From Haliotis rubra (taxonomy: Eukaryota), in the NCBI RefSeq assembly GCF_003918875.1, contig NW_025767141.1:434001-498000 (forward strand): 64,000 bases of DNA. The letters run 5' to 3'. The notes under the pieces are model-generated. The model was not told the DNA's origin and searched no databases. It worked only from the letters and a program-made list of their open reading frames with translations. Position numbers and translations under genes: made by a program. Positions 31,821 through 55,200 of this stretch are shown one piece after another. How positions within the stretch are numbered: the stretch's first letter is position 1; each line of letters opens with the position of its first letter.

Positions 31821-33063
31821 ATTGCTCCTGCTTCGATCATATTGTCGGTATTGACTCTAAGGTTAACCATGTGCTCAACTGTCAAAGTTAGAAACAATAT
31901 TTAATGTACAAAAAAAAAAATATTTTACCTGTATTTGATTGTTGTGGCCATATCTGGGACAATTACACTAAACGGCAACATCGCCTCCTAGAAAAAATAG
32001 ATCTGGGTACTTTGACAACATGTGGAACAAGCCATTATGAAATATATGAAGAAACAACCTTTATTCTAAAAGAACTTTGCTTTGTCAAATTACAAACAAT
32101 TTAACGCCTGACTACTTTACCTACAGTACCGGTCGTAATCGACCTACAGTGGTCGAAGTGATCGAATCTAATCTGTTTAACCTTAGAAACCAATCCAAAC
32201 TATACATTGCAAACAAACTATTATGAAAAAATGTTATGAAATTTTGACATGATGGTATCAAACTATGGAACGAACTTCTCAACGAATATACTAGCCCCTA
32301 CTCGTTATCTCAAAAGAACAATCAAGATGAAAACCAAACCTGTCAATTATTTCAATTTGAATTATGGATGTTGCTTCTGCCAAATTTCAGATTCCCGACT
32401 ACGATTCGGATGTAGTGATCTAAACGCCCATATGTTTGAAAGATATGTCTCTGAGTATCCATACTGCTCCTGACATTATCGCTGTGAAAATTGCTTTCAT
32501 TTTTTCTTCATTTGTCCAAATTTTACTGAATTCAGAAATAATTTGTACATATTCTATGAAGTTTTTACAGTGTTCTTTTTGTCAACGTATTTACATATCC
32601 AACATTCTTCCCACTGTTTCACCTCATTAACGGGCAGTAAAAAGACACATCCTATGTATAATCAGTATTCATCCAATGAATAAAACATATGTTTAAATCA
32701 AGTTTAACCTTAGCTGTAGCATCGGTTTTTGCGTTACCTACTGTGTTGCTTAACGTGCAACGCTGACTAGATGACAGTTTTTCTGCTCATAGGTTGTTTA
32801 ACAGGTGAGCGAATGTGCCGTTAGATTGTTGTAACATGTGCAATTGTTTATGTTTTAAGGCTCTTGCGAAATTGCTGCGAACATTTTAACTCTCATTTGT
32901 CTGAATAATTATTGGATTATTAGTTCTTTTGTGAAATTAGGTTTCATTATCGTCATCAATGCGTGTGAGATGATATTTGTCATAGTTTTCTTTTTGTCAA
33001 CATACATTTAGAATAATAAGGTATAATTGTATTGGTCACGTGTTCTTGTCCAAATATGTCGTG

Positions 33064-33141
33064 TATAAAAGGAACATGTCCCATCATAATTCATCAGCTG
33101 AACGACCAGTTGTAATCCAGCTTTCTGCACCGACCGAGAAG
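33064..33141 (+). promoter_or_regulatory. TATA box and non-coding first exon of GS-like copy 1
   Basis: TATAAAA at 33064-33070 is followed by a block ending GAAG|GTAC. The block is conserved in copy 2 (donor after 40712) and copy 3 (donor after 51536). Each coding exon has an AG acceptor 4 nt before the ATG, so an upstream exon is required. Confidence 0.65.
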
Positions 33142-33429
33142 GTACGCCGTTCACTATCTGTTACTGATACAAGTCGACACCAGCATAACCAAGGTACAGA
33201 ATACTGAAGGGTTCGTAGTAACCATTATTTTTTAACTCACTCACTCAATTGTTTGTTGTTGAAGCTACACTCTTCAATATAGTAAGTACACATATGAAGG
33301 CGTTCTGTGAGTCCGTATCAGATTATCCGGTGATTAACATCTTCAGCATCTTAGGTTGATACTTGTTGTTTGATGAGATTCGCATTTCAGCCTGCCTGAT
33401 TCCGTCTCAGACTTTGTAATCACAAAATT

Positions 33430-33711
33430 GTCACCCTCAGATGGTATCCTTGTCACTGGATAATATTTATCCGGGTGAGCGAGTTTAGTTTTACGCCGCA
33501 CTCAGCAATGTCCCAGCTATATGGCGGCGGTCTGTAAATAATTGACCAGACAATCCAGTGACCAACAGCACGAGCATCGATATACGCAATTGGGAACCGA
33601 TGACATGTGTCTTCCAAGTCAGCGAACCTGACCACCCTATCAATTTAGTCGCCTTTTACGACAAGCATGGGTTTATTACTGAAGATCAATTATAACCCGG
33701 ATCTTCACGGG
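33430..33711 (-). mobile_element. SINE family 1 with a 3' extension, in intron 1 of GS-like copy 1
   Basis: Full body plus the same 45-bp extension as at 6328-6375. Confidence 0.88.
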
Positions 33712-34750
33712 TTACGTGGTTTAGTGTGTCAGATATGGTCGGATGTAAAACTTGAACGTTTAAGCACCCAAAAACGGGAAAGAGAGGTAATGGAGATGAT
33801 AACTACGTATGTTTATTCTTGGTGCTCAATGCATTCTTAGGCTGTTTCTAGCAACTTACCTTTTGACTTTCCTTAAAGAAATCCAATGAAAGTAGCCCTT
33901 AAAACCTTGGCACCAGCAGCTTGTGATCTGTCCGTATGAACTGTACGATGAGTGGTGAAAACATACAAAGATTCCATGTTGGGTTGTTAGGAAAAAGAGA
34001 TTGACACTGCATACTGTTTACTGCACGATCAACGAAGGGTTCAAAGCGTACGAAATCAAAGCTTAAATTGTTTACTCATTATTTGTTTGCGAGTATATGC
34101 AGGATGGTCCGGGGTTTTTTTCTTCTTAGAAACAAACACTGACTGGTAGCTTTAAAAGTATTTGTTCCATGCTCTTGTAAACACTACAGGACAATGAAAT
34201 TGCTCGATAATGTGAAGGACCAGTGTGACCTCGTCCCGGTTTATGTACTGGAAAAAAAATAGAATCACGCCATTAACCTAAAATATGTTCCAGACTAGTG
34301 CTAGGCCACTGTGACCCTACGCATGTGTTCAACATAGATATTCAATTCAGATAAATCATACATTTTTCTCTCTGCTCTCTGATTGCTGTCAGTCATCGCC
34401 AGGCAGATTTACTCAATAAGAAAGACGATTCTTTTCTCACGTATATATGATTAAATCGGCCCGAGAGAGGCAGTTGTACATACACGTATATGATTAAATC
34501 GGCCCGAAATTCATACACGTATAGATTAAATCGGCAGTTGTACATACACGTATATGATTAAATCGGCCCGAGATTCGTCTCCATAGCTCCACAGGAACCG
34601 ATGGAGATGTATGAGATCTTTTATTCGGCGAATTATATTATCTGACAGTGTTCAAGCCAGGATTGAAAAATTGCAATGTTTCCCGGGTTAATTGTTCAGA
34701 AATAATCAAAGAGTCCAAATAATGGTCAATTTTATTTTTTTTGCAGACCC

Positions 34751-36351
34751 ATGTCTCAAATGAAAGTCTCCTTCGACTATTTACGACTAACTATCTGTGA
34801 TATATCTGGAAAGTCCAGAGGAAGAGTTGTTCCTTGCCGCCATGCCGAACACACCTGTAGAACTGGAGTCACAGTAGGAGTAGGTATGTGTTGTCATCTG
34901 TAACGTTACCCTTTCTGTGTTGAAATTGTAAGAACCGATGGAGGTTGAACCAGTGGGATTGGTGGCTGAGACTCGTTAGTAAGATCAGTGGTATCAGTCT
35001 TGTGACTGGATGCCCGTTCCAGACATAGTACCACACCTCCATCATATAGCTATTACGTTAACAAAAGAAAATACATTTCTTAGTAAAGATGCTCATCGCA
35101 CTTAAGTATAATTGTCGAGGTTGGAATATTTAGGGTTCCATGGTATTCTGTAGTGGTAAACAACAAACAATAACAATAATAACCATGAATGTTTGAAAAG
35201 GCTGTATTGAAATAAACATACTCATAAGTAGAACATCCTTGTCTGGAAATATTGCAGGCGTTCCAAGGGCACTGCGAAGGGATTATGGATTTGTAATCGT
35301 TCCCGACCTCAGCACAATGAAGACTATTTCCTGGGATGGAGGTGAACAGTACAAGGTGGCCGAGGTCATATGTGATGCGTATTGGTTGAAAGACAAGACA
35401 CCTCTTACATTCTTTCCGAGGCATGCTGCTCAACAACAGCTTCAACGATTGGCAGATAATGGGTATGCAATGTTATCAGGATTTGAGATGGAATACATGT
35501 TGTATTATAAAAGCCTACCTGCGTCGGGGAAACACCGAATGTATCACTTGGACCATACTCAACACAGCGAATTTCTCTATGCCTTAGACAAAGGTATGCG
35601 TAATGCAGGTGTTGATGTAGAGAACTTCCATACAGAGTGGGACGCTGGGCTCTACGAAAGCGTTTTAAAGGCATCCAAAGGCATCACTGCTGCTGACCAG
35701 GCTTTTACCTTTCGAAATGGAGCCCTTCAAGTTGCAAGTAAGCATGCAGATTATGGAGTAAGCTTTAAAGCAAGACAAAAATCGGGTGAAGTCGGAATGC
35801 ATTATAATCATTCAGTGTTGTCGATGGAAAGTGGCGAAAATATTTTCAGTGATTCAAGCAAGCCCGATGGTATATCAGATTTGGGAAGATGTTGGCTCGC
35901 AGGTCTGCTGAAACATTCAAGGGCCCTTTCAGCCTTCTGGTGTCCGACTGTAAATTGTTATGATCGACTCCATCGTCCAAGGAGACCAGGGAATATCAAC
36001 TGGGCGTGTGAAAATCGTCTTTCATGTTTCCGCGTTAAAGCAGATACTGATAAAATAGGGGTCTACTTTGAGAACCGGATTCCAAGCGGCAGCAGCAATC
36101 CATATCTGACTATGGCTGCCACGATAGCAGCAGGTTTAGACGGGGTATTCAATAACTTGGATTGTCCTCCTGAATGCCCAGACCCAGATGATCCATCTTC
36201 TAACTCCACAGCAGCTAATACTCTACCAACCTCTCTCCCCGAGGCTCTGTCTGCTCTCCAGGCAGATACTGACATGGTGAATATTCTCGGGAAGGAGCTG
36301 GTGGACTGGTTTGTTGCAGTTGCAAAAAAAGACATTGAAATAAGCAGCTGA
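34751..36351 (+). CDS. Lengsin-like / type I glutamine synthetase-fold protein, copy 1, 408 aa
   Basis: Coding exons 34751-34883 (MSQMKVSFDYLRLTICDISGKSRGRVV..., GS N-terminal beta-grasp motif) and 35258-36351, joined by a phase-1 GT-AG intron. GS catalytic motifs: GFEMEY, HTE..GLYE, GMHYNHS, YDRL, ENR..FRV, FENR.P....NPYL. Confidence 0.93.
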
Positions 36352-38284
36352 TACATTACTTCCAGCGAATGTATTCCAAGCCACTAATTCTCTACTCTCG
36401 TAAAAGGTATAATGGAAAACTGTTTTAGTAACTGATAATATCGATTGAGTTAAGATAATTTATTACAGTCTGGTTGGTTCATTCGATTAAGTCCACAGTC
36501 AGGAGAGCCTTTCCTATGTACATCCTATATGTGGTGTGTAACCTATCTTGTACATTCGTATGCTACCATCGGACCCCATATGACGTATCTGTTTCCAAAT
36601 AGCCTGATGACATCACTAACAACAACACTGCAATATAATTAGAAAGCTGTCGACACGAATATATACAATTTCACACAAACAATATATTGCTTACTTGTCT
36701 AAAGACAATAGTCATATAATTCCGTCATAGTTTCCATATGTAGACTATCCATAAACCATTTTGTATAAGCAAACGACAATACCATCATAGCATACAGGCT
36801 TAGAACTGATCATACCATATATGTATCTGAATCCCATTCTATAGCATCCTCTCTGTTGGACTAAATTGGCCATTCTGACAAAGGAGTACTGAAGCCTCAT
36901 CCAGATTCATATCCGGTCAAAGAACTCACAAATCTACAGTTCCACAATATTTCTCACATGGAGTCAGAAAATCAACATTAAATGAAAAATAAAGACATGG
37001 TGACAGTGAATTAAAACATGATTTATTCCAAAAAGTATAAACAAGGATTCAAATGCCGATGTGACGCACTATGTGTGTATTCCTATCATTTATTTATTGA
37101 ATGTCAATTTTTTAAATCAGCTAGAAACGAATTAATGTACACTCTATTGTTAATTACGAAAATAGCTTGTGCTGCTGTTTGGCAACGCAGACATGTGGAC
37201 AAGAATGTTAGGAGTGTACATGTATATAATGAAAACAACACGGTTTGAGTGAGCAGTGTTAATGTGAATACGTTACCTTTCTATCGTTAGATATATTTAT
37301 TGAAAATAAACATTGATGTGAAACTACTGGAAAGGGAGTTATTTTTAAATTATGATTAAATGTGTTCAAATATAAGCTAAAGACAAAGACACCCAATTAT
37401 GTTTTCATTGTGTCATTAACGATTTCACTTCACAACAGATTTTGCATTCGATGTTACTTTCGTCATTTTCACACTTCAGTGATTCGTTGTGAGCCAATAT
37501 TTCTATTGTTTTTCAATATTCTAGTAGCAGTGTGATTGCTCTTATGCAATCAGACTGAGAATGTGTCGTCCACAGCGTAAAGTTTTAACGACATACCTCA
37601 AATAATTGAACTCGGACAGAGATACCCATGACATTCATAGTCTGTGATTTGCGGACTTCTGAAACTTGTTTCTGCAGGCATATACTGTTAATGATTGTCC
37701 CCGCACAAGGCGCCTTAGATCAAGAACACACGTCCTGGTTCCAGTTTCAGAAATATTCAATATGGTTTTAGAAGCTTGGGCTACAATTGGTAACGAGCAA
37801 CTCGTCCGAAGAGGCCAATATTTCGTGTCACCTGGCTCATGGCATTTGAATGTAACCCGAATCTGCAAACATGGTTACTGGATGGTTTGCTTTAGACTCC
37901 GTTACTTACAGGCTGAAGTCATATCGCTTAGATATTGGATTCAAAATACACGTTTTTCTGTATAATATTCTCTGCCGCTTTAGACGCCAATGGGATGTAA
38001 CACATGTTATATTGCGGACAGATATAGTTCAGTACAGATTCTAGTACTTTTGTTGGGTTGAGTCCTATCCGGGATACGAACCCACACCCTCAGAGTCAGG
38101 CACGGAATCGCCAGCACACAAAGTGAGGCTAACTCAGTCAGCCGCCGCGGCTTCCACAAAAATAGAAGTCGGACAACTGGTAGTCTTGACCACGGACTTT
38201 GTGTACCCCTCTAATACGTGCAAATTAGCACGGTTCCCATTTGGTATCTTCCCATAAGACAGACCTCCCAAAAGACAGAGTGCA

Positions 38285-38575
38285 TAAAAACAACATATTT
38301 TATGGGTGGTTGCATAAGGCTTAATTAAGCTGTACCCTTGATAATAATGGTATGTGCCCATATAAAAAAGACAACATTATGTATTAACTATAGTTTTATT
38401 AATTCATATGTAATGAACTATGATTATTAAACTGCTTAAAACAACATATTTTATGGGTGGTTGCATAAGGCTTAATTAAGCTGTACCCTTGATAATAATG
38501 GTATGTGCCCATATAAAAAACAAACATTATGTATTAACTATAGTTTTATTAATTCATGTAATGAACTATGATTAT
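38285..38575. repeat. About 150-bp near-perfect tandem duplication
   Basis: AAAACAACATATTTTATGGG...GAACTATGATTATT occurs at about 38286-38428 and 38438-38576. Confidence 0.92.
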
Positions 38576-39049
38576 TCACAAGACGCATTGCATCAACATA
38601 TACATGTACATCAACATATATTTTCACATTTACTTGTGAATATTATCAAAAATAATCATTTATATACATCTACCTATCAAGCATATGAGACCAGGCACCA
38701 TATTATTTTACATCACATGTTTGTCAGTTCACAGAGAACACTTATTAGAAAGTCACTTCAACATCATCAGTGGCACTGGTAGGAAACTTGGTTACAGTGA
38801 GGGTGGAGTCTTTGTGATTTTGCGACAGAAACTTTATGATTTGTGACAGAGTCTTTGTGATTTGTCACAGAGTCTTTGCATTGATATGTGTTATGATAAG
38901 CTAAATGGTAATTATAGCTTTAGTTTGTGGAACTAAAGACTATAATATTCACAATGTATTCACTTGTGAACTAGGAGAGATAGGAATGTGTTGTTAGTGA
39001 CTCTGTGTGAGCTCATTAATTACATAGGGGTGGACAGCATGGCTCAGCT

Positions 39050-39640
39050 AATTAGTGTACTCATTGAGTCTGTTTTTGGGAGGTCTGTCTTTTGGGAGTG
39101 AACCTCCCATTTTTGTGGAAGCCAATAGTCAGCAATAATCAGCACAAGCCAATAATCAGCACTGAAATCAGCAGAAGAATTGACTGAAAAGCATCGCTCT
39201 GAGGTAAGTGGTGAATACCTGACCATTTTGAACACCGAAACATACATGGTAGTACTAGCACAATGAGATCAGCACACAAGAACCTTCCATTCCAGACAAA
39301 GTATAGCTGAATGTGCTGTCCAGAAGCATTACCACATCCAAGAATTGTAGTGGTGGAGGATGTGGGACTTGTTACCCCCAACCAAAATATTGAAGAACGT
39401 GATTTTTCTACAATGCCCTTCTCATTCACCTCCCAGATTAATTCCACTTTGCCAGACAAAACACACATATCGACATTACAGAACTCTTGAAAGAACGTCT
39501 CAGTGAACTATCGCACCAGTGTAATGATGATGGGTGAGATGTTTCCTGTTTGCCAAGATTGGTTAGAAAGTGGTACACACTGTGACTACACCTCTCTTGT
39601 ACCTGAATCCTATTCAACAAGTGCTCTTTCTTTACAGACC
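39050..39640 (-). mobile_element. pogo/Tigger-like (DDE_1) transposase relic
   Basis: VTSPTSSTTTILGCGNASGQHIQLYFVWNG resembles the DDE_1 motif TxxxCxNAxGxxxPPxxIxKG; reading frames are broken. Confidence 0.6.
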
Positions 39641-41789
39641 TGTGAAAATCCGGGTTTCAGTCTGTCTTCCCCATCACATGCCTGTCGTGAGACGCAACTA
39701 GGGTTAGTTTGCGTGCACCTTTGTTGATGGACAATACGAAGGGGATATTCTATTTAGCGATTGCTCCTGCGGCGTTCATATTGCCAATATAAACTCTAAG
39801 GTTAACTGTTATCGTAATTTTAATATCGTCTAAACACCGTACAAAGTTAGAAACAATGTACGAAAAATATATTTTACCAGCTTTTGATTATTGTGGCCAT
39901 ATCTGGGACAACTGTATAAAATAACAATGCCACCTGCGAGAAAACTTCAATCTTGACACTTTGACATGTGGAGCAGTCCGTGTAATAAACACACTTTTTT
40001 ATATAAAACGACCAAATTAACACCGGACGACATTACTGATCTTAATCCACCTACAGTGTTCGAATCCAATTTGTATAACCTATAACTAGATACCAATCCA
40101 CCGTACAAACTATACATTGCAAACAAACTATCATTAAAAGTCTCAGGAAATCTTGAAATGATAGTGTCAAGCTATGGATCGAACATGCCAACGAATATAC
40201 CAGCTGTCCTTTGTTGATGGGTTTGATATAATGTAAATGTATATGGCGTTGTATTGTCGTTATATGGCTGAAATAGTGCCTATGAACCATTTCATTTTAA
40301 ATCACATATTGTTAAATACTCGATAACACCAGAAAGCCTCAATTTTTGCATCAAGATGTCACTTATTCAGCTACTAGTGTTTGACAGATGAGCGATTGTG
40401 CTGATTGTTGTAACATGTGCAACTTGTTTATGTAGTAAAGTCCTCGCAAAATTTAACCCTCATTTGTATGAATAGTTATTTGGTTAATAGTTGTTTTGTG
40501 ACATGATTAGGTTTCATTATCGTCATCAATTCGTGTAACATAATATTTGTCATAATTTTCCTTTTTTTCAATATACATTTAGAATATTAAGCTATAATTA
40601 TTTTGGTCACGTGTTCTTGTCTAAATAGGTTTTGTATTAAAGGAACATGTGCCGTCATAATTCATCAGCTGAGCGACCAGTTGTAATCCAGCTTTCTGCA
40701 CCGACCGAGAAGGTAGGCTGTCCACTATCTGTTCCTGATACAAATCGACACCACCATAACTGAAGGGTTCGTAGTAACCTTTATTTTTCAACTCACCATT
40801 GTTTGTTTTTAAGCCACACTCTACAATACGTCGTTCCCATATGACGGTGCTCTGAACATAATGGACATCAGCATCTACTACGTGACTGGGGTACATGACA
40901 TGTATCATCAAAGCTGACGCGCAAACCCTGGCCTGTCAGTCGCCCCAAAGCCACATAAAAAGACGAAACCGTCCCGCAAACGAAATAACTACGGGAGCGG
41001 TTCCCCTAGCATGGAATCCAATGACAGTAGCGCTTACAACCTTGCCATCACCATGTAATACTGTTTACTTGACTAACGAAGGGTTCTAAACGTACGAAAT
41101 CATCAAAAGCAAAAATCAACTATAATGATAATTTGTTTGTGAGTAGGATGATGGTGGGGGTTAGGGTGGTGGGGGGAAGAGGCGATATCCTGATATCCAC
41201 TGTACTTACAAACATACACAGAGACTGGTACCTTTTAAATTAGGCTTTCCGTGCTCTTGTGAACACTACAGGACGATGAAATTGCTCCGTAATGTTACTT
41301 AGGACCAATGTGACCTCGTCCAGCTTTATGTACAGGCAAAAATGTAGAATCATGCCAATAAGTTCAAATATCTTCCTGATTAGGTTTTATTGTGCTAAGC
41401 AGCTGTGACTGCACGCGTCCGTTCAACATAGATATGCAATTCAGACACATTGTTCTGACTCAATGCCATCTTTTTCAGTCATCGCCAGGCATGTTTACAT
41501 AAACACCTTATTTTCGGTAGGACTCGGACAGCTGAACGAACCAACGACCTTTTCCATTAATACCCAGTTCACAGAGGCAGTTGTATACATAGGATTTTAA
41601 TCTGCCAGAGATTTGTCTCCATAACTCCATAGGAATCGATGGAGAAGTATAAGATCAACTGCCCGGCGAATTATATTATCTGACTGTGTTCAAACCCACG
41701 ATTGACAACAAGCAATCGCAATGTTTCATGGGTAAATTGTTCAGAAATAATCAATGAGTACAAATAATAGTTAATTTATTTGCAGAATT

Positions 41790-44059
41790 ATGTCGCAGAT
41801 GAAAGTCTCCTTCGACTATTTACGACTAACTGTCTGTGATATGTATGGTAAGTCAAAAGGAAGAATTGTTCCTAGCCACCATGCCGAACACACCTGTAGA
41901 ACTGGAGTCACAGTAGGAATAGGTATGTGTTGTCATCTGTAATGTTTCCCTTTCTGTGTTGAAATTGTAAGAATGTGGGCACTCGGCATAGCGCAGCTAA
42001 ACTAATTGGATTGGGAGGTGAGGTTGCTAGTTGACGTGTTGCCAGTTCCAGACCTATCTATACACCTCCATCATATAGCTAGAATATTACGTTAAAGAGA
42101 AGAAAAATACATTGTTAGTGAAGTTGTTTATCTTACTTAAGTTCATTTGTATATATGTGGTTATATTTTTCTTTCGTTGTTTTATGTTGTTTTCTTCCTT
42201 GTTCTCTTTGTTTTGTTTTCGTTTGAGCAGAAGAGATGGGTTGTTTGATTTCTGTTGTTTTTCATCTCGGCTGAATTTGACATTAATGCAATGGTTTTGT
42301 TTATTTTCCTGTATTTGCGCAAGTCCTTTTTCCAACTTTTATACTGTTAACCCCACGAATGAAAGCTCCCTTGTAAAATATAACTGTGTTATCCACACGA
42401 AAGCAAAACATCCCTTTTTGCTTTGTTAAAATGACAGGAATACAGTTTTAAGTTGCAGAATAACTGATCGTCGAGCCTGGACTTTTTACAGTGATATTCT
42501 GTGGTGGTAAACAACAAACACTAAGAATCATAATCATGAAAACCGCCTCCGTTGTGTAGTGGTTAGAGCGTTCGCCCGGAGAGCGGAAGTTCGTGGGTTC
42601 GATCCCCGGCCGCATCATACCAAAAGACGTTAAAATAGGGTACTTGTTGGTCCCTGCCTGGCGCTCGGCATTAATGGGTACATCAAGGACTGGCCGGCTC
42701 AGAATCAGTATAATGTGTCTGAGTGGGGTATTCATGTTTAACTGCGGCATGGTATCTCAGTGAGCTAACACTATAAAACCAGCTTAAGTCTGGGCTAGTA
42801 CAAGCAGCAAAACATACATACGCATGCACGTTGTCATATGAGCTAAATGTTCTTAAGTGCTATGTTAAACCCCATTTCACCTCACCATAACATGAATGTT
42901 TGAAAAAGCTGTATTAAAACAAACATAATCATCAGTAAAATCATCAATGTCTATAAATATTGCAGGCGTTCCAAGGGCACTTCAAAAGGGCTATGGCTTT
43001 GTAATAATTCCCGACCTCAGCACAATGAAGACTATTTCCTGGGATGGAGGTGAACAGTACAAGGTGGCCGAGGTCATATGTGATGCGTATTGGTTGAAAG
43101 ACAAGACACCTGTTACCTTTTTCCCGAGGTATGCTGCTCAACAACAGCTTCAACGATTGGCAGACAATGGGTATGCAATGTTATCAGGATTTGAGATGGA
43201 ATACATGTTGTATTATAAAGGCCTACCTGCGTCGGGGAAATCCCGAATGCATCACATGGACCATTTTACACACAGCGATTTTCTCTATGCCTTAGACAAA
43301 GGTATGCGTAATACAGGTGTTGATGTAGAGAACTTCCATACAGAGTGGGACGCTGGGCTCTACGAAAGCGTTTTGAAGGCATCCAAAGGCATCACTGCTG
43401 CTGACCAGGCTTTTACTTTTCGAAGTGGAGCCCTTCAAGTTGCAAGTAAGCATGCAGATTATGAAGTAAGCTTTAACTCAAGACAAGAAACGGGTGAAGT
43501 CGGAATGCATTACAATCATTCAGTGTTGTCGATGGAAAGTGGTGAAAATATATTCAGTGATTCAAGCAAGCCTGAAGGTATATCAGACTTGGGAAGATGT
43601 TGGCTCGCTGGACTTCTGAAACACTCGAGGGCTCTTTCAGCCTTCTGGTGTCCGACTGTATATTGTTATGATCGACTCCACCGCCCAAGGAGACCAGGGA
43701 ATATCAACTGGGCGTGTGAAAATCGTCTTTCATGTTTCCGCGTTAAAGCAGATACTGATACAATAGGGGTCTACTTTGAGAACCGGATTCCAAGTGGCAA
43801 CAGCAATCCATATCTGACTATGGCTGCCACGATAGCAGCAGGTTTAGACGGGGTATTCAATAACTTGGATTGTCCACCTGAATGCCCAGACACAGAAGAT
43901 CCATCTTCTTACTCCACAGCAGCTAATACTCTACCCACGTGTCTCCTCGAATCTCTGTCTGCTCTCCAGGCAGATACTGACATGGTGAATATTCTCGGGA
44001 AGGAGCTGGTGGAATGGTTTGTTGCAGCTGCAAATAGGCACATTGAATTAAACAGCTGA
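41790..44059 (+). CDS. Lengsin-like / GS-fold protein, copy 2, 408 aa
   Basis: Coding exons 41790-41922 and 42966-44059. Same exon lengths (133 + 1094 nt) and motifs as copy 1; open throughout. Confidence 0.93.
42541..42885 (+). mobile_element. tRNA-derived SINE family 3 (Meta/MESC-domain-like) in intron 2 of GS-like copy 2
   Basis: tRNA head (TGTAGTGGTTAGAGCG, GGTTCGATCCCC), body CATACCAAAAGACGTTAAAA...CCTGCCTGGCGCTCGGCATT, TSD CATAA(T)CATGAA. Absent from copies 1 and 3. Confidence 0.88.
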
Positions 44060-45760
44060 TACATTACTTCCAGCGAATGTATTCCAAGCCACCTATTCCC
44101 TAATATAATAGATAACTGTTTTAGTGGCAGACAATATTAGTTGAGTTACGATAATTTGTTAGGGTCTGCTTGGTTTATTCTGTAAAGTCCACAGTAAGGA
44201 GAGCCTTTCCTATGTACATCCTATATGTTGTGTGTAACCTGTGTTGTACATTCGCATGCTAAACATCGGACCCCCATTTGACGTATCTGTTTCCAAATAG
44301 CCTGATGACATCACTAACAACAACACTGCAGTATAATTAGAAAGCTGTCGACACGAATATATACAATTCCACACAAACAAAGTATGGCTTACCTGGATAA
44401 AGACAATAGTCATATAATTCCGTCATAGTTTCCATATGTAGACTATCCATAAACCATTTTGTATAAGCAAACGACAATACCATCATAGCATACAGACTTA
44501 GAACTGATCATACCATATATGTATCTGAATCCCATTCTATAGCATCCTCTCTGTTGGACTAAATTGGCCATTCTGACAAAGGAGTACTGAAGCCTCATCC
44601 AGATTCATATCCGGTCAAAGAACTCACAAATCTACAGTTCCACAATATTTCTCACATAGAGTCAGAAAATCAACATTAAATGAAAAATAAAGACATGGTG
44701 ACAGTGAATTAAAACATGATTTATTCCAAAAAGTATAAACAAGGATTCAAATGCCGATGTGACGCACTATGTGAAAATTCGTATCATTTATTTATTGAAT
44801 ATCCATTTTTAAATCAGCTAGAAAGAATTAATGTACACTCTGCTTAAGAATTAATGTACACTCTGCTTGTAATTCCGAAAATGGGTTGTGCTGCTATATG
44901 GCAACGCAGACATGTGGACAAGAATGTTAGGAGTGTACATGCATATATAATGAAAACAACACGTGAGTGAGCAGTGTTAATGTGTATACGTTTCCTTTCT
45001 ATCGTTAGATATATTTATTGAAAATAAACTTTGATGTGAAACTACTGGAAAGGGAGTTATTTTTAAAATTATGGTTAAATGTGTTCAGATATAAACTAAA
45101 GACAAAGACACCCAATTATGTTTTCATTATGTCATTAACGATTTCACTTCACAACAGATTTTGCATTCGGTGTTACTTTCGTCGTTTTCTCACTTCAGTG
45201 ATTCGTTGTAAGTCAATATGTCTATTGATTTTCAATATTCTAGCAGCGGTGGCAACAGTAGACATAAAGAATTTAAGTACATGCATTTATAAGGGGAAAA
45301 CACGGTTTGAGTCAGCAATGTTAATGTGTATACGTTTCCTTTCTGTCACTAGATATATTTATTGAAAATAAACATTCATCTGAAACTATTGAAAAGGGAT
45401 TTCTAAGTTATGATTAAATGGGTTCATTCCTTTTCATGAGAATAAAATATATCTAAATACAAACAAAAGAGCTATGGTAGTAACTATGGAAAGAGCCACC
45501 ATTTTTCTTTTTTCCAAGTAAAAACACAGATTTATGCAGGAAAATTGTTCCGATCATTTCGAGTCGGGCACATATCACAGAGCAGGGAGAATAGATTATC
45601 CCTGGACAGAGACATGCATACGTTGGGTATGAAAATCCGAAAGCTAGGCTGAAAAAGAAGTAGAACCCACGAGATTCATTTATACTGCATCTTTACATGT
45701 TGAAACTTACTGTCAGTGGTATTTTTAACATAGATTAAAACAAGTCCGATGTGATAAATA

Positions 45761-46149
45761 GGGTACCAGTCGAATTGCCCAAACTACAAAATGCCACAGC
45801 AAATTTTGTCAAATTGCCCCGGATTTTTAGTCAAATTGCCCCAGGGAGGTAGTCAAAATGCCAAAATTAATTTAAATTGATTAAATATATGCCATAAATG
45901 CATGGTTTTGTCAACTTTGATATTACGTTCTTCATGTATAAGTTATATGTACAATTATGGGTTTACTAATGGAACATTTATCAGAAATATTACTTCCTAA
46001 TAACTTTATATGAAGTAAATAATATCAATTTTGACCAAAACTATGCATTTATGGTATATATTGAATATATTTAAATACATTTGACCAAATTAAGATCAAT
46101 GACCAAATTTGCTGGGTCATTTTGTACCTGGGGCAGTTCGACTGGTATC
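45761..46149. mobile_element. Foldback MITE
   Basis: About 45-bp imperfect TIRs (GGTACCAGTCGAATTGCCC... / ...GGGCAGTTCGACTGGTATC), plus an inner inverted pair (about 45865-45925 versus 46020-46078). TA flanks. Confidence 0.8.
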
Positions 46150-46789
46150 TATGATTTCACATGAACTTGAAAATGTTTCGCTATAACTTTCGTTCCGGTT
46201 TGGAGGTCTCAATGCTGCAGTCTATCTGAAAAATTGCAGAATACAACGGTAAATCATGAAGTACATGTTACATTCATTGTTTTCCATTTTGTTCAATTAC
46301 ACATGTCGGCATCAACCTCGCTATTTGTCAAGATAGGGTGTGTCTTGAAAGTTCTGTATTTTCATTGGCTGACAGGATGTCATCCTAAGCTTATGACCGA
46401 GCACCATAACTATTTACATAAGCAAAAACTAGGGAAATATACACTGTCCTATAATTCGGGGAATAACCTATCTGCGTCGCTTATATGATCTCCACCAGGC
46501 TAGGATCTTGCATGGAGACTTCATACGTTATTAATGAGTACAAGGATCCTAATTTGTTTTTCAACCAAATAATTCCAGTGTAATTTTTATTGCAGATAAT
46601 ATCTATTTTCCCTCGTCTGAAGCATAATCATTTTTTTAAAATTGCAGGCACCCTGCAGTCAGCCATTTTACACAAAATGAACTGCAATCACAATCACAAA
46701 ATGTGGGATTGGTCATATATTTATAGGGGTGGGTGTGCTGGTTGGACTGTATCACATTTTACTGACAAATAATATTCCTGATAAATTAT

Positions 46790-47171
46790 TAGGGCTGCGC
46801 AATATAACCGGTTTACCGGTATTTACCGGTTCAGACATTAAAACGATGCGTATTGCGATACGCTGATCGAAAATCGGTATTTTGACATGCATTCGGAAAA
46901 CTTCGTAACACTCGGAAATCTTCGGATATTTCCGTTTTTTTCTTTTTCTTTTCCCTGTTTCATTAGTGCCAAATGTTACTTACATTTTTATTTTGTCATG
47001 ATTAAAAGTTTTTATAAAAGGTTAATCAATCATAGTGATTTTGTTGTGTTTTTGCTATATAATCAAGCGTTAACTCGATTATAAGTAGTTTTTGTTAAAA
47101 AATTATCGCAATATATGCTTCCGCATCGCAATATATCACAATATAAAAATTATCTGCGATACCCATCCCTA
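46790..47171. mobile_element. hAT-type MITE
   Basis: TIRs TAGGGCTG / CATCCCTA with a perfect 8-bp TSD TAAATTAT (46782-46789, 47172-47179). Confidence 0.88.
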
Positions 47172-48109
47172 TAAATTATCTGGTCTATTTTTAAAATTAT
47201 GTTGACATCAAGCGGTGCCTCCGGCTCCGTTTCACTTGATTCTTCTTATTTATCTTTACGGGAATATTGTCAAGCAAGATGGCGTCATGTCACGTGATAC
47301 CCACTGTGCTCATTAACTGTCGGATGTTTCCGTAATAGGTGAAAGAAATTGGAGTACGTTTTTTGTGCATTTAATTTTTTTTTGTGAAATGTTAGGAACG
47401 AAAGGTGACATTTAGGATGTTTTTTCCAAATATCAAAAACAATTACGTTAGTATTCTCCTTCAACTCCATTTCTTTCAAAGAATATGTAATTTCCCACAA
47501 TCCTCCTCATTTTCATTCTGGCTAAAATTGCAATGTATCCAGCTGGAGTACGTACCATGCATTAAGTGCAGCTACCGTTGTTATGTTCCTAGTATGTCGG
47601 AACAATTTCGGTTGCTCTGTAACAGGGATGAATCAAGGGATTGTATATTGTGTACATACATTTATAACTAATCATTTTCAGTTTATTCTTATTTCAGGTG
47701 ATCCGACAGACGACTTCTCTATACATTATATAGATGTTGCAATTAGTTGTCAGTCCAGCTGCATCTTGTCTTGGCCTTAATTGTTCAGTTCTGTGTCACA
47801 GGGCTGCTTTATTTTGTATTTAAGGATATCTGGATCGATCTACTTTTATGTCATTGTCTTTAGTTGTTTTAACAGTAGCCCAGGCTCAGCTTCTCAGTTG
47901 ATTGGTCTAATTTCAAATATACTTCTCACCGCCATGTTACTACTAATCAGTTGCACAACACTGTCTGTCAAGAGGACTGTTTAGAAGGTTGAATTTTGGT
48001 TAATGGTAAGTAATTATACATGTGTAATTGTGTTATACATAGCAAATTAAACTCTAATATAAATAATTTTATAAGATAGACATAAATATGTAAATCAAAT
48101 GTAAATATA

Positions 48110-49440
48110 CTGAACATCATTGAAAACGCACCACTTACAAAAGTTCAGATTACTAAAAGCACGTGTAAGGAATTGATATTAAGGTGGATAATAACAGATT
48201 GACGACTGACAAAAACAACAACACAGAAAGACGCTCATTTATTGAAATGTTCCACAGTCAGAAAGGATCAAACACATGTGGGGTCAAATCGAAAAGTCAA
48301 TATCGCGTGTAACCGCCATTTCCATTGACACACTGAAGTGCAACGTCTCCTCAATGAGTCAATAAGCGTCCGAATAGAGTTCTTGAGGATGGCATTCCAC
48401 TTCTGCAGTAGTGCAGCCTCAAGTTCCCGGATATTTCGCATCTGTCTTCCCCGAAAGACTTTGACCAATTTCGTCCCACGAGTGCCCCATGGGGGATACA
48501 TCTGGCGACTGTGCTGGCCAATGAATACCCTGGATGTGTTGCTGGGCCAGATACTGCATGGGAAGCCTAGCTGTGTGTGCCCGTGCGTTGTCCTGTTGAA
48601 AAGTATGGGTATCTTGGTGGTGATTGAAGAATGATACGATGTGATTCTGAAGAATCTGCTCACGGTAGCAAAGATATTAACTCTCCCTTGACAGACATTA
48701 GGGTCAGTTCTTTGATTATATCTTATTGCACCCAAGACCATGACACTCTCACCACCCAACGGTCTGTCTGAACCACACACTCATCAGCATAACGTTTACC
48801 ACGTCTACGCCAAACACGTAATCGGACGTCAGCATTACGTAGGTGAAGAAGTGACTCGTCAGTGACTACCACACCATGCCATTGTTGTAAACTTTACTGA
48901 AAATGCCCCTTAGCCCATTGTATACGGTCATTATGGTGTCTGTCAGTCAGAATTAGTCCAACGTAAGGACGTCGAGCATGGAGCCCTGTAGCGTGTAGAC
49001 AGCGTCGCATGGTGTCAGCGCTGATGACCCCACGTCGACCTTGAACTAGTGCAGCGTCCTGGCAGTCGGCAGTGTTTGATCACGGATATGGTCAAGGTCA
49101 ATATGGCGATCCTGACGGGAGGTCGTGACACGTTGCCAAGGTCGTTAAAGGTCACTGGTGCTACCTGTCTACTGATGTCGTCTATGAAGCCCAACGATGG
49201 TGGAGTGGCCAAGTCCAAGTTGTGGAGCAATATCCCTGCTGCTGGTGCCACCCTGAATCATGCCTAGTGCACGTCCTCTTCCGCGAGATGTTAACCTCGA
49301 CATCTCTGTCCTCGTTTCACAATCGTTAGTGAAGCAATGAGAATCGGATCTCATGCACTTCATTGATCATTGTCATGCTGAAATCCATCTTGATGAAAAT
49401 ATGGACAATTTTAGACTGGTGCGTTTTCAATGATGTTCAG
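48110..49440 (-). mobile_element. Tc1/mariner element copy C
   Basis: Same TIRs, TA flanks, degraded transposase. About 170 bp deleted upstream of the ORF relative to copy B. Confidence 0.92.
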
Positions 49441-49849
49441 TAGATTTGCACTGTATGCTATTTTACCTGTATGAATGTGTGTATGGTTGGTTTCCCTATA
49501 TGTTTAATCAATATGCTGCCTTGTAGTTCTTGTTTACGAATGCTCTGAAATCCTGAAGTGTAGCCTGGGCCTATGGCCTCCACTACAAAGCAAAAAAAAT
49601 AAATAAATAAAGATTCGTTTACGAATGCTCTGTATGATGTAAGATTGGTCTATTTCTTCAATTCTATATCTTGTTTGTAACTCCATAGTGGTAGTTTCAA
49701 GTATGTATATATGTGTATATAATTGTATATATGTGTATATTGGTATAATTGTATTATTTTATGTATTGTCTCTAATCTGTGTGTCATATTAATGTAGGGT
49801 TTTTGCACGTGTTGGCTGCTCGGCTGCTGGGTGCTTGCACACACTCCCG

Positions 49850-50227
49850 TGTCACCCACAGGGTAGGTTTCATTGCTGTTCCTATAGTCTGTTTCATGAT
49901 ATGCGACATGAAATGCCACTTGTAATTAATAGTATATGTGCTATTTTTGCTCATTACCTGCGTGAGATTATATGAGACAGGTACATTGTTTACTTCAGTC
50001 TTTATGAAGACATATGTTATTCAGACGTGTACATATGAAGACATGCGTTCATCAGATATTTATACCTTTATATATGAAGGCATGTGTTCATCACCTATGC
50101 TTTTAGCGTATACACATACATTGTGTAATTATTGCTGTTACAGAGTGTCTTCTTCTTCTTCATCCACTACGGAATAAAGATATAAACATCACAACCCGGA
50201 GCCTGTGGTTAATTACGGAGGGTAACA
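49850..50227. mobile_element. Solo-LTR-like element
   Basis: Termini TGTCACCC...GGGTAACA, with an internal TATA-like motif and AATAAA. No clean TSD. Confidence 0.5.
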
Positions 50228-50833
50228 CCACTATATCACAGTTGCACCCCTCCGGATCTGGTTCATATTCTTTTTAAAAATATATTTGTGACCATTTAGT
50301 TATCTTACTGTCCTTTGTTGATGGGTTTGGTACAATGTAAATGTATATGGCGTTATATTGTCATGATATCACTCAAAAAGTGTTCATGAAACATTAAATT
50401 TCAAATTACATCTTGTTGAATACCCGATGACAACAGTCCATGCAGGTAGCAAAGGTACTGTATATGTCCCCATGGTCCCTAGCATGATGATCTACCTTCA
50501 GTTGTTGGCGATCTATAGCCTGTTTATATATCGTATTCTCCAAATAGTGCTATCAGTTTTAACTTTCCACACTAAGTTTTTTTTGTAAATGTGATATTCT
50601 AGTTGTTTTACTGTCCTTCGTCGACAGGATTTTATGATATACATATATTCCATTGCAATGTCACTTATGTTCTCGTCACGATATGGCTGAAATATTGCCG
50701 ATGTGACGTTAAATAATAACTTTCAGCTCATAGATTGTTTAACAGATGAGCGATTGTGCCGTTAGATTGTTGTAACGTGTGCAACTTGTTTATGTTGTAA
50801 AGTGCTCGCAAAATTGATGCGAACATTTTAACT

Positions 50834-51330
50834 GAGTGAGTGTCTTTAATTCCTCCTTGATAGAAGATATAATAAAGGATAATAAAATCGTGGACATGAA
50901 GCAGGTTGGAAAATTATTCAGGTGAAGTAAGGAGGTGAAAGGAAGAGTTAATAACTGATGACTCTAAGAAAATGCCCAACGATGATGACAAATGACTTGT
51001 TGTCAAGGTCAATTTCATGTCCGCCAAAGAGAGCTAGAGTTTGACTCTCAGGGTCCATTGCGTCCAGCGTCACATATGTCAAGTACGGATTACCACATGT
51101 TCCCTCTGCTCGAGAGCACTCGGGTCCCGCTGCAGGACTTTAACAGATGTAGGGCCAGGTTGTCCAGAGTTACAATGAGGACACCTCCTTGCCTTTATGG
51201 GTGTGGTAATCAGGCGAAGCAAGCTGTAGTTCAGTTCTGTGTTTTTGGTCGTACTTGCTGAGGACCCTCAGATAGTGGGGAGAGTAGCAGCTGTGTAGCT
51301 GCAAGAACACACTCAGTTCAGGGTCGTCGT
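50834..51330 (-). mobile_element. LINE-like 3' fragment inserted upstream of GS-like copy 3
   Basis: Interrupts a block that is contiguous in copies 1 and 2; ends ATTAAAGA(CACT)n on the minus strand. Confidence 0.55.
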
Positions 51331-51904
51331 TAATTGGTTTTCATTACCGTCATCAATGGATGTGAGATAATATTTGTCATAGTTTTCCTTTTTGTTATGA
51401 TACATTTAGAATAATAAGCTATAATTGATTTGGTCACATGTTCTTATCTAAATAGGTTGTATATTAACGGAACATGTCCTACATAATTCATCAGCTGAAC
51501 GACAAGTGTAAGCCATCTTCGGCACCGTTCTAGAAGGTACGTTGTTCACTCTCTGTTCCTGATATAAGTCGACACCACCATAACCACGGTACAGAATACT
51601 GAAGGGTTCGTAGTAACCATTACTTTTTTAACTCACAATTGATTGCTGGTTAAGCCACACTCTACACAGCCTGGTTTCCGGGGTCTGATATGCTAACGCT
51701 TCGACGCTGACAACGGCAATGACTGCCGAATGGCGGCGATCACATCACTCAACAGGAACCAATGGACAGTATAATATCTTTTTTCCCTGCGAATTATCCG
51801 ACTGTGTTCAAACCCAGGATGGAAATATAACAAAGTTCTCTGGGTAAATTGTTTAGAAATAATCGAAAAATCCAAATAATGGTCAATTGTTTTTTTGCAG
51901 AACT

Positions 51905-54027
51905 ATGTCTCAGGTGAATGTCTCCTTCGACTATTTACGACTAAGTATCTGTGATATATCTGGAAAGTCCAGAGGAAGAGTTGTTCATTCCCGTCATGCC
52001 GAGCACACCTGTAGAACTGGAGTCACAGTAGGAATAGGTATGTCTTGTCATCTGTAATGTTTCCCTTTCTGTGTTGAAATTGTAAGAATGTGGGTACTCG
52101 GCAGGATTGGTAGGTGAGACTCGTTGGTTAGGTCAGTAATATCATTCTTCCATGGATCGATGTTTGTGACCTGTTGCCAGTTCCAGACATATTTATACAC
52201 CTCCATCATATAGCTGGCATACAGTGTTTGCCCTTAAACCTGAAAATCTGCAAGCCCTAAGAACCCAGAACCATAAAAAGTCATGGGTCCTGATCAAAAT
52301 ATGTAGGCCCTATATTTTAGCTACAATATAATTTCCAGCAAACAAAAAATATAACTAACAAGCTGAGTTTAAGAGTTTAATTTAGAAATTTAAACTAGAA
52401 ATTACTGAATGCTATTTTCTCAAAAATATTACTTTAAGGTTATTGGGGATGAAAAAGTTGTCGGCCATTAGGACCGGCAAAGCTGTGGGTCCGAATTGTT
52501 TTCAGTCGGCTTCTGGTCTAAGAACTGATTTCAAACGTTGCTAGCATAATACGATAAACAGAATAAAATACATTGCCTAGTTAAGTTGTTTATCGCCCTT
52601 TATCTCCTTCTTATGTGTGTAGTTATTTTTGTTTAGTTGTTTTCTTTCCTGTTCTTTTGTCTTGTTGTTTGTGTGAGTTGGAGGTGGGCTGTTTGATTTC
52701 TGTTGTGTTTAATTTCGACTGAATTTGACATAGTTTGACTTAATGCAATGATGTTGTTAAGTAGCAGTATAACTTATCGTCGAGCCCAGATAACTGATTG
52801 TCTTGTCGAGGATGGAATATTGAGGGGCCCATGGTATTCTGTAGCGGTAAACAACAAACAATAACAATCATAACCATGAATGTTTTGAAAAGCTTTATTG
52901 AAGTAGAACATCATTGTCTGGAAATATTGCAGGCGTTCCTGTGGCACTGCGAAGGGATTATGGATTTGTAATAATTCCCGACCTCAGCACAATGAAGACT
53001 ATTTCCTGGGATGGAGGTGAACAGTACAAGGTGGCTGAGGTGATCTGTGATGCGTATTGGTTGAAAGACAAGACACCTCTTACCCTTTTTCCGAGGTATG
53101 CTGCTCAAAAACAGCTTCAACGATTGGCAGATAATGGGTATGCAATGTTATCAGGATTTGAGATGGAATACATGTTGTATTATAAAGGCCTACCTGCGTC
53201 GGGGAAATATAAAATGTATCACTTGGACCATTTTCAACACAGCGAATTTCTCTTTGCCTTAGATAAAGGCATGCGCGATGCAGATGTTGATGTTGAGAAC
53301 TTCCATTCAGATTTGGATGCAGGGCTCTACGAAAGCGTTTTAAAGGCATCCAAAGGCATCACTGCTGCTGACCAGGCTTTTACCTTTCGAAGTGGAGCCC
53401 TTCAAGTTGCAAGTAAGCATGCAGATTATGAAGTAAGCTTTTACTCAAGACAAGACACGGGTGAAGTCGGAATGCATTATAATCATTCAGTGTTGTCGGT
53501 GGAAAGTGGTGAAAATATTTTCAGTGATTCAAGCAAGCCCGATGGTATATCAGATTTGGGAAGATGTTGGCTTGCTGGACTTCTAAAACACTCAAAGGCT
53601 CTTTCAGCCTTCTGGTGTCCGACTGTAAATTGTTATGATCGACTCCACCGTCCAAGGAGACCAGGGAATATCAACTGGGCGTGTGAAAATCGTCTTTCAT
53701 GTTTCCGCGTTAAAGCAGATACTGATAAAATAGGCGTCTACTTCGAGAACCGGATTCCAAGCGGCAGCAGTAATCCATATCTGACTATGGCTGCCACGAT
53801 AGCAGCAGGTTTAGACGGGGTATTCAATAACTTGGATTGTCCTCCTGAATGCCTAGACACAAATGATCCATCTTCTAACTACCACAGCAGCTAATACTCT
53901 ACCAACCTCTCTCCCCGAGGCTCTGTCTGCTCTCCAGGCAGATACTGACATGGTGAATATTCTCGGGAAGGAGCTGGTGGAATGGTTTGTTGCAGCTGCA
54001 AATAGAGACATTAAAATAAACAGCTGA
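51905..54027 (+). pseudogene. Lengsin-like / GS-fold protein, copy 3, with a +1 frameshift near the C-terminus (truncated allele or sequencing error)
   Basis: Exons 51905-52037 and 52933-54027. An extra A at about 53881 (TCTAACTACCACA versus TCTAACTCCACA in copy 1) gives a stop at 53892-53894. The homologous tail AANTLPTSLPEAL...RDIKINS* is intact in the shifted frame up to TGA 54025-54027. Confidence 0.75.
52222..52540. mobile_element. hAT-type MITE in intron 2 of GS-like copy 3
   Basis: TIR-like CAGTGTTTG / CAAACGTTG, 8-bp TSD CTGGCATA / CTAGCATA. Absent from copies 1 and 2. Confidence 0.8.
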
Positions 54028-54469: not shown

Positions 54470-55200
54470 ACTACTGGAATAAAGTAACTGTGCATTATTT
54501 AATGTTATGCCATTTTAATGCAAAGAGATGGTAACATGATTTGTGGTGTTTTCATTGATCACTGTTTAACTGGTGACTGGATAATATGTAGATTTGACAC
54601 TAGACATTGTAACACACCCTTAAAGAGATGTGGTGTAAAAGTTACAAATTCAGTATCGTGTGTATCCACCATTGGCGTTGATACAGGCTTAACAAAGACG
54701 ACGCATAGTCGACACGATTAAAGAAAGGTTGGGGAATGTTGTTCCATGTCTGAACCAACGCTTGTCTCAATTCAGCTAACGTAAATGGCTGATTCTGGGC
54801 TTGGCTCCATTTCCTCCCAAGAGGACGGGTCCGGTAAAAACAGCTGGCCAGGGGAGTACAGGAATAGTCTGCTTTCTTAGGAAATCTGTAACAACACGAG
54901 CGACATGTGGACGGTCATTATCTTGCTGATTCTCTGTCCTTGAATGAACGGCTGCACATGTGGCTCGGTGGTCTAATCCCTGTATCACAGACCTGTCAGA
55001 TTGCCATTGACAAGGACAAATTGTGTCTGAACATGAGTTGTGATTATTCCCCATACCATAACGCGGTCGCCACCAAACTGTCGACGTTGAACAACGCACG
55101 CGTCAGCATACCGTTCACCTCGCCGTCTGTACATCCTAGCCCTGCTGTCTGAGCTGTCAAGATGAAACCTCGACTCATCAGTGAACAAAACACCATGCTT
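54470..55200 (-). mobile_element. Second Tc1-family relic (3' half of transposase)
   Basis: FTDESRF...GGDRVMVWG and QQDNDRPHVARVVTDFL...LPWPA in broken frames. Boundaries approximate. Confidence 0.85.

Follow-up and report, generated by a model that had tools for sequence, protein, structure and literature searches.

Tandem 'lengsin-like' genes of the abalone Haliotis rubra as probable gamma-glutamyl-amine ligases with an arginine-rich active-site flap

Which reaction, if any, do the 'lengsin-like' genes of abalones catalyse? The stretch of Haliotis rubra DNA presented here (the window, 64,000 nucleotides) matches scaffold QXJH01000455.1 of assembly GCA_003918875.1 at approximately 434,001-498,000 and carries three tandem copies of one gene whose products have the fold of type I glutamine synthetase (GS-I). 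Animal genes of this kind tend to be written off as 'lengsin', a lens protein devoid of activity. A first reading of the letters alone (the original prediction) had proposed that this cluster encodes gamma-glutamyl-amine ligases, perhaps connected with the conjugation of biogenic amines in gastropods. Our analysis, combining residue logic, class separation, selection and expression, makes it fairly probable that copies 1 and 2 encode gamma-glutamyl-amine ligases using an acceptor other than ammonium, and not glutamine synthetases. Public databases already annotate these genes, and the superfamily is known, as is the bacterial class of amine ligases; new are a function predicted for the animal family by reasoning and the uncommon, arginine-rich variant of the flap.

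Self-BLAST and tblastn within the window recovered three forward-strand copies, each with the Pfam domain Gln-synt_C, in line with the three tandem genes originally proposed. They share 90-92% DNA identity and one structure: a short coding exon beginning with an ATG (at 34751, 41790 and 51905 in copies 1, 2 and 3), a donor G/GTATGT, an acceptor TTGCAG/GC and a long second coding exon (the slash marks the splice point). Their parts are as follows.

34747..34883, forward strand: copy 1 coding exon 1, with the ATG at 34751, encoding residues 1-44 plus one base (tblastn with the H. asinina protein P0001, splice sites, spliced RNA contigs)
34751..34883, forward strand: translated part of this exon, which supplies the opening strands of the N-terminal beta-grasp domain
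35258..36351, forward strand: copy 1 coding exon 2, residues 45-408 and the stop, catalytic domain (open reading frame, Pfam)
35974-35988, forward strand: copy 1 flap RPRRP
41790..41922, forward strand: copy 2 coding exon 1 (tblastn, splice sites, translation)
42966..44059, forward strand: copy 2 coding exon 2 (open reading frame, Pfam, translation)
43682-43696, forward strand: copy 2 flap RPRRP
51905..52037, forward strand: copy 3 coding exon 1 (tblastn, splice sites, translation)
52933..53894, forward strand: copy 3 coding exon 2 up to a premature stop (open reading frame, translation)
53301-53324, forward strand: copy 3 FHSDLDAG, with Asp as the E212 equivalent
53649-53663, forward strand: copy 3 flap RPRRP
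53881..53881, forward strand: inserted A of copy 3 (AACTACCAC, where copy 1 has AACTCCAC), a +1 frameshift as read in the assembly
53882..54027, forward strand: remaining C-terminal coding sequence of copy 3, in the shifted frame only (tblastn frame 1 at 53881-54024; translation)

The spliced products of copies 1 and 2, each of 408 aa, are 100% identical to RefSeq XP_046582663.1 (P0339) and XP_046582689.1 (P0338), respectively, both named 'lengsin-like', and our gene models therefore equal the public annotation. The initial picture of an intact triplet holds for these two copies but not for the third, which has both the 1-bp insertion and the Asp at the E212 position. The frameshift leads to a stop at 53892-53894 that truncates the product at residue 364, with the loss of the last ~45 residues; the C-terminal frame stays readable to 54027, where the original prediction had ended the cluster. 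Because the frameshift removes the C-terminal helices and a metal ligand has changed from Glu to Asp, copy 3 is probably a very young pseudogene or an assembly error.

To place the active-site residues, Escherichia coli GlnA and PuuA (from NC_000913) were aligned with the abalone proteins and their relatives. Copies 1 and 2 keep all the metal ligands, namely E129 and E131 (GFEMEY), E212 and E220 (HTEWDAGLYE), H269 (GMHYNHS, which also contains S273) and E357 (ENR), together with the arginines R321 (YDRL), R339 (ENR), R344 (FRV) and R359 (in the same ENR as E357), whereas copy 3 reads FHSDLDAG in place of FHTEWDAG and thus has Asp at E212. All the motifs first quoted for these proteins (GFEMEY, GLYE, GMH, YDRL, ENR, FRV, ENR) are present, and the mapping made by eye was correct in substance. 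By contrast, the ammonium site of true glutamine synthetases (D50', S53', Y179, N264 and the E327 flap) is replaced or deleted at every position. No acidic or hydroxyl residue takes the place of D50 and S53; the residue aligned with D50 varies among alignments (V/I, G or a gap) and is an acid in none of them, as had been predicted for this loop, which is, nonetheless, only 1-2 residues shorter than in GlnA. The 13-residue Y179 loop and the adenylylation Tyr are missing. The N264/G265 loop, read earlier as GEVG, is GEVGMH, two residues shorter than in GlnA, and H271 is N in all three copies. The flap reads RPRRP in each copy, as claimed, with E327 aligned to the first R of RRP in HRPRRPG both by MAFFT and in the HMMER pairwise alignment to archaeal glutamine synthetase, so that the proper alignment proposed as a check on the idea has R at E327, no acid at D50 and an intact equivalent of neither.

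This pattern is that of a large class. Among 339 fetched homologues of at least 300 aa, aligned by hmmalign to a curated profile, the flap residue is F in 109, E in 69, W in 68, L in 33, R in 15, M in 10, N in 7 and K in 7 (the vertebrate lengsins). D50 is present in 64 of the 69 homologues with E327 and in 1 of the 270 without it, and the complete nine-residue core is kept in 236 of these 270. The homologues thus fall into two sharply separated classes, true glutamine synthetases and glutamine synthetase-like (GS-like) proteins with an intact phosphoryl-transfer site and no ammonium site. The window genes fall in the latter class with E. coli PuuA, gamma-glutamylmethylamide synthetase (GMAS; PDB 9qur) and NpaA1 (8wwu), all of which combine a retained core with a lost ammonium site; the proposal that the abalone proteins resemble amine ligases rather than glutamine synthetases is borne out to this extent. 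The R flap itself is restricted to 15 of the 270 GS-like proteins, which are vetigastropod or neomphaline sequences plus three others, F, W, L and Y being the dominant residues.

Profile scores and fold define the superfamily and leave the abalone proteins below every equivalog cut-off. Pfam Gln-synt_C (PF00120) matches the three copies with 212, 195 and 178 bits (cut-off 24; E 1.5e-62, 2.1e-57 and 3.7e-52). NCBIfam GlnA (TIGR00653) gives 168 and 156 bits against a cut-off of 429, GGputSyn (NF045547, PuuA type) 163 and 150 bits against 650, and GS-III 165 against 470. An AlphaFold2 model of the H. asinina protein P0001 (90% identical; alignment of 85 sequences) reached a predicted local distance difference score (pLDDT) of 94 and a predicted template-modelling score (pTM) of 0.94, and shows a beta-grasp N-domain followed by the catalytic C-domain. 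In Foldseek, its template-modelling (TM) scores to archaeal and Gram-positive GS-I chains are 0.88-0.90, and those to NpaA1 and GMAS lie in the same range. The modelled fold, one of the checks proposed for these genes, thus confirms the GS-I architecture and is equally close to ammonia and amine enzymes, which it cannot tell apart. Sequence matches among solved structures are best for archaeal glutamine synthetase 8oow (1.1e-37), followed by GMAS (1.3e-32) and, much weaker, lengsin 2j9i (7.5e-16).

Three GS-like gamma-glutamyl-amine ligases, from a functional class that also includes GlnA3/4, serve as references for what such an active site can do. E. coli PuuA (glutamate-putrescine ligase, b1297) has the GS-I fold and the full metal/ATP/glutamate core and, like the abalone proteins, has D50, N264 and E327 replaced (D50 by A/P, N264 by A and E327 by Y in our alignment), the Y179 loop deleted and no adenylylation Tyr, so that the likeness noted in the original prediction is real. 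It differs in its aromatic flap PGMYVP, against RPRRP in the abalone, and in its long branch in our tree; conversely, the abalone genes have no surrounding puu-type operon and score far below the PuuA-type cut-off given above. GMAS (9qur, 7cql) matches over the full length, with a TM score of 0.88, and also has no E327; the Arg of its 9qur flap, VVGRSLSG, lines up with the leading R of RRP in the abalone proteins. It is, however, bacterial, shares ~28% identity, and has a flap one residue longer and other pocket loops. NpaA1 (8wwu/8wwv/8x6z), the GS-like enzyme of 1-naphthylamine, glutamylates bulky amines; it is among the top structural neighbours (TM 0.88-0.90), with a flap PYSLAP devoid of E327, but shows 24% identity, has a longer N-terminal part and aligns well by sequence only in its catalytic domain.

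We propose the following mechanism. The three genes are young tandem paralogues within a spiralian GS-I-like ('lengsin-like') family, and the products of copies 1 and 2 are most likely active enzymes of the cytosol, which would assemble into GS-I-type oligomers. With two divalent metals, ATP and L-glutamate bound, these would form gamma-glutamyl phosphate, as glutamine synthetase does. With this core kept, and with all residues that bind and deprotonate ammonium (D50' latch, S53', Y179 loop, N264 loop and E327 flap) replaced or deleted, the acyl phosphate would be attacked by an amine other than ammonia, larger or otherwise different, yielding a gamma-glutamyl amide, ADP and Pi. The copies would be isozymes with shifted acceptor preference, differing mostly in three loops of the acceptor pocket.

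The distribution of differences among copies agrees with this last point. They concentrate in residues 44-59, 130-152 and 211-220, which from knowledge of glutamine synthetase structure we take to be the D50' latch, the Y179 loop and the N264 loop: 20 of the 49 positions in these three loops are variable, against 43 of 357 elsewhere (Fisher p = 3.5e-6, for loops chosen post hoc). Pairwise dN/dS (omega) is 0.34-0.40 overall, 0.8-1.5 inside the loops and 0.19-0.25 outside them. Purifying selection is thus strong outside the pocket loops, and the loop differences suggest isozymes with shifted acceptor preference.

Copy 1 is, moreover, expressed. We compared region 31500-36900 with reads of two small runs of one study (X1 and X2) and two larger runs (X5 and X6). 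Contigs of X1 and X2 join 34881 straight to 35256, the predicted exon-exon junction of copy 1, and these runs are therefore RNA; by contrast, X5 and X6 span the introns of copy 1, i.e. they behave as DNA. The locus transcribed and spliced as modelled is copy 1 or an allele ~97-98% identical to it. Three further elements of the transcript and its surroundings can be placed.

33064..33071, forward strand: TATAAAAG box upstream of copy 1, a candidate promoter from its sequence
33095..33193, forward strand: copy 1 non-coding first exon (5' untranslated region, UTR), its 3' end given by the GT donor at 33194 and its putative 5' end by the TATA box
36352..36862, forward strand: copy 1 3'UTR, reaching at least to 36862 (X1 contig, record 7, at 36606-36862; no contig over 36387-36567)

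The non-coding first exon came to light through a 15-nt loose end before 34745 in an X2 contig (record 10), which matches 33177-33191 exactly, where 0 matches are expected by chance; together with the GT at 33194, this places the end of the exon at 33193. In a three-way alignment of the upstream regions, the TATAAAAG block is conserved upstream of copy 2 (TATTAAAG) and copy 3 (TATTAACG). The upstream exon region of copy 2 (40740-40790) is without a 14-nt piece of copy 1, CAAGGTACAGAATA, which holds the GT donor of the copy 1 5'UTR, and copy 2 therefore needs another donor or first exon. Copy 3 is probably transcribed too, since 0.32-0.41 of the sampled words of its exon are present in runs of the same study, a share exceeding what cross-matches from copy 1 at 94% identity would produce.

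Several observations weigh against an amine-ligase function. H271, an ATP contact, is N, and the N264/G265 loop, which contacts glutamate, is shortened, so that the binding of glutamate or ATP could be altered. Three arginines in the flap are unexpected beside a cationic amine, yet GMAS aligns an Arg at the same position. The raised omega of the loops may be plain relaxation, given that the loops were delimited after the differences had been seen and that their 49 codons cannot separate positive selection from relaxation. Finally, we found no biochemically characterised enzyme of the animal GS-I-like family in the searched literature. The phrase 'lengsin-like' was not found there either, and abalone 'lengsin' is mentioned solely as a growth-associated differentially expressed gene (PMC11758661).

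The phylogenetic position of the genes helps to weigh the alternatives. Word-indexed and profile searches retrieved many Haliotis paralogues, including at least 10 distinct H. asinina proteins, and further family members in the gastropods Batillaria, Littorina, Babylonia, Nucella, Gigantopelta and Elysia, as well as in annelids, flatworms and echinoderms; vertebrate lengsins were likewise matched. Bivalve or cephalopod members were not among the named matches of these general family searches, which hints at their absence. An exhaustive HMMER search with an Elysia protein added a member from Aplysia californica, along with proteins of Elysia crispata and of the land snail Candidula. In our main tree, a quick maximum likelihood (ML) search made with no approximately unbiased (AU) test, true GS-I sequences are outgroups and the window genes lie inside a GS-like clade of 62 rows (support 96), outside of which PuuA branches with a length of 1.8. 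The spiralian sequences, window genes included, form one clade (100); its sister clade (95) unites vertebrate LGSN with echinoderm and Chloroflexi/Actinomycetota sequences, so that the abalone genes and LGSN are not orthologous. The three window copies cluster with two H. asinina proteins (98/97), next to pairs from H. rufescens and H. cracherodii. Haliotis paralogues cluster by species, which would reflect either independent duplication or gene conversion.

The alternative that survives best is a special case of the amine-ligase reading: the three genes would be gamma-glutamyl-biogenic-amine synthases of the EC 6.3.2.18 type, acting on histamine, dopamine, serotonin or octopamine to inactivate transmitters or detoxify amines. 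In gastropods, gamma-glutamyl conjugation largely replaces monoamine oxidase as the main route of monoamine catabolism (PMC6454038), and gamma-glutamylserotonin is reported from annelids and Aplysia (PMC8155685), whose phyla are those where the GS-like clade was found. The EC 6.3.2.18 activity of Aplysia extracts requires ATP and L-glutamate, and in the passage of a 2022 review that treats it only Stein and Weinreich 1982 are cited (PMC9547800). Gamma-glutamylation is the main way in which gastropods and annelids inactivate monoamine transmitters. The enzyme has been known since 1982 as an activity only, and no gene assigned to it was found in the searched literature. The family might have been missing from Aplysia, and the hypothesis at the level of the family survives in that it is not: XP_005110298.2 (473 aa; named 'glutamine synthetase', or 'Lengsin' in UniRef) belongs to the same spiralian family, combines the full core with the loss of D50 and E327, and its flap, GFFAP, is aromatic. 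It nevertheless falls in a caenogastropod plus heterobranch clade (98), outside the separate expansion (94) that holds all Haliotis paralogues and Gigantopelta. The window genes are therefore not its orthologues, nor the conserved gastropod enzyme; they are the most derived tip of the Haliotis expansion, with no one-to-one relation to the Aplysia gene, and their R flap is rare in the GS-like class. ATP-grasp or GCL-like enzymes could carry the orphan activity as well. We thus regard a biogenic-amine function of these particular genes as unlikely, and transmitter inactivation by them as possible but unsupported. The link to gastropod conjugation made in the original prediction stands in part, through a family member with a complete core in Aplysia, but not for the triplet itself, which is not orthologous, has RPRRP instead of an aromatic flap and includes a defective copy 3.

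A broader version of this idea deserves to be kept as a tentative proposal, with a somewhat better chance of being right: the spiralian GS-I-like family may provide the enzymes with which gastropods and annelids gamma-glutamylate amines at the expense of ATP, including the orphan EC 6.3.2.18, and abalones may possess a battery of acceptor-specialised isozymes, of which the RPRRP triplet would be the most derived. Genes of the Aplysia clade and the Haliotis paralogues with aromatic flaps are better first candidates for EC 6.3.2.18 than the triplet. The complete core, the lost ammonium site, the expression and selection data and the Aplysia member together provide this orphan activity with a short list of clonable candidates.

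A different use of the acyl phosphate is a distinctly improbable explanation, in which the acceptor attacking gamma-glutamyl phosphate would be anionic or zwitterionic, such as taurine or an amino acid, or the acid activated would be one other than glutamate. The three flap arginines, the hydrophobic D50 equivalent and the remodelled N264/G265 loop, which contacts the alpha-amino group of glutamate, speak for it, but R321, E131 and R359, which hold glutamate, are kept. An anionic acceptor deduced from the arginine-rich flap was downgraded on account of GMAS, a methylamine enzyme that aligns an Arg at the same place. Of the 15 R flaps, 12 occur together with E222 in GEVG, a covariation that is phylogenetically non-independent; an E222-R286 pairing stays weak, acidic residues in the N264 loop being common across all flap classes.

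It is similarly hard to believe that the abalone proteins are non-catalytic, with a structural or binding role as in vertebrate lengsin (LGSN; 2j9i). The latter, a metazoan GS-I relic, shares the wider GS-like clade with them and gave rise to the database names 'lengsin-like' (RefSeq) and 'Lengsin' (UniRef). The N at H271 and the shortened N264 loop would fit such a role. However, LGSN has lost E129, E212, H269, R339, R344 and R359 (its core sites read I, D, S, I, N, N and K) and is much extended at its N-terminus, whereas copies 1 and 2 keep these six residues, and indeed all eleven of the core, in 408 aa. The contrast drawn at the outset with a catalytically dead lengsin is therefore justified, and the purifying selection outside the pocket loops, the weak match to 2j9i and the sister-clade position of LGSN point the same way.

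The least probable explanation is that of genuine glutamine synthetases assimilating or detoxifying ammonia via a remodelled ammonium site, for which the best solved-structure match (a true archaeal glutamine synthetase) and the nitrogen detoxification suggested for expanded annelid lengsins in the Riftia genome paper can be quoted, but animals already have GS-II for the ammonia task, none of D50, S53, the Y179 loop, N264 and E327 is present, the GlnA score stays far below its cut-off and the genes lie outside the true GS-I group. That paper describes lineage-specific, partly clustered expansions of GS-I-like 'lengsin' genes in the vestimentiferans Riftia and Lamellibrachia comparable to those seen here, proposes ammonia/urea detoxification for them and states that other lophotrochozoans lost prokaryote-like GS-I genes (PMC8789280). 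In gastropods, by contrast, the family has clearly been kept and enlarged, and the residue pattern speaks against ammonium being the substrate.

Returning to gamma-glutamyl-amine ligases as the preferred reading, abalones would thus harbour a rapidly diversifying family of probable amine-conjugating enzymes, with possible relevance to the metabolism of nitrogen, polyamines, dietary amines or xenobiotics. Flap residues vary among Haliotis subclades (R, N, D, W, F, A and L), and R321 is lost in some paralogues; within the triplet's own group, neither the HRPRRP flap nor GEVGMH varies among 9 sequences from 4 Haliotis species. Downstream of the window, at 529-544 kb on the same scaffold and strand, lie two more GS-like genes, from a sister subclade with an LPRKP-type flap.

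~529 kb, same strand as the triplet: P0012, a 253-aa fragment
~541 kb, same strand as the triplet: P0009, 385 aa

The array therefore spans at least 75 kb, with at least 5 family members on this scaffold and more than 10 in the abalone genome. The 3' flanks of copies 1 and 2 (36352-37500 and 44060-45220) are 94% identical, their coding sequences 93%, and synonymous dS is 0.13. A 3' flank as similar as the coding sequence, and more so than synonymous sites, together with clustering by species, hints at gene conversion within the array.

Two observations concern the wider family. A Chloroflexi/Actinomycetota clade annotated 'glutamine synthetase family protein' (flap F) joins echinoderm sequences and vertebrate lengsins (SH-like approximate likelihood ratio test, SH-aLRT, 95) rather than standing outside all animals, and judging from this tree metazoan GS-I-like genes may be non-monophyletic, or a transfer may have occurred. 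A protein of 4424 aa from a Candidatus Auribacterota metagenome-assembled genome (P0346/P0481), annotated with a glutamine synthetase beta-grasp domain, matches the query in 12 separate stretches and appears to be a giant polypeptide with multiple GS domains.

The surroundings of the triplet in the window offered no functional neighbour genes, a Pfam search of eight flanking open reading frames giving no domain, and neither Rfam nor ARAGORN found RNA genes anywhere in the window. Broken reading frames at 48268-49363 and 54776-55250, both on the reverse strand, have weak similarity to DDE_3 (E 0.007) and to a helix-turn-helix (HTH) domain (E 0.001), below the Pfam cut-offs, and are probably decayed transposon copies of Tc1/mariner type, the first lying between copies 2 and 3 and the second beyond copy 3. 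There is also a repeat of ~240 bp, with copies 82-88% identical.

33475-33715: ~240 bp repeat, in intron 1 of copy 1
6329-6579, 14131-14371 (reverse strand), 59470-59621, 1010-1151, 19760-19897 (reverse strand), 22792-22920, 26790-27017 and 12951-13060: further copies of the repeat

Rfam and ARAGORN recognised no tRNA or known RNA in this repeat. Its summed contig depth reaches 10^5-10^6 in the DNA runs, against tens in its flanks, with many rearranged joints, and it looks like a very high-copy element resembling a short interspersed element (SINE). An assembly gap of 584 N occupies 7251-7834.

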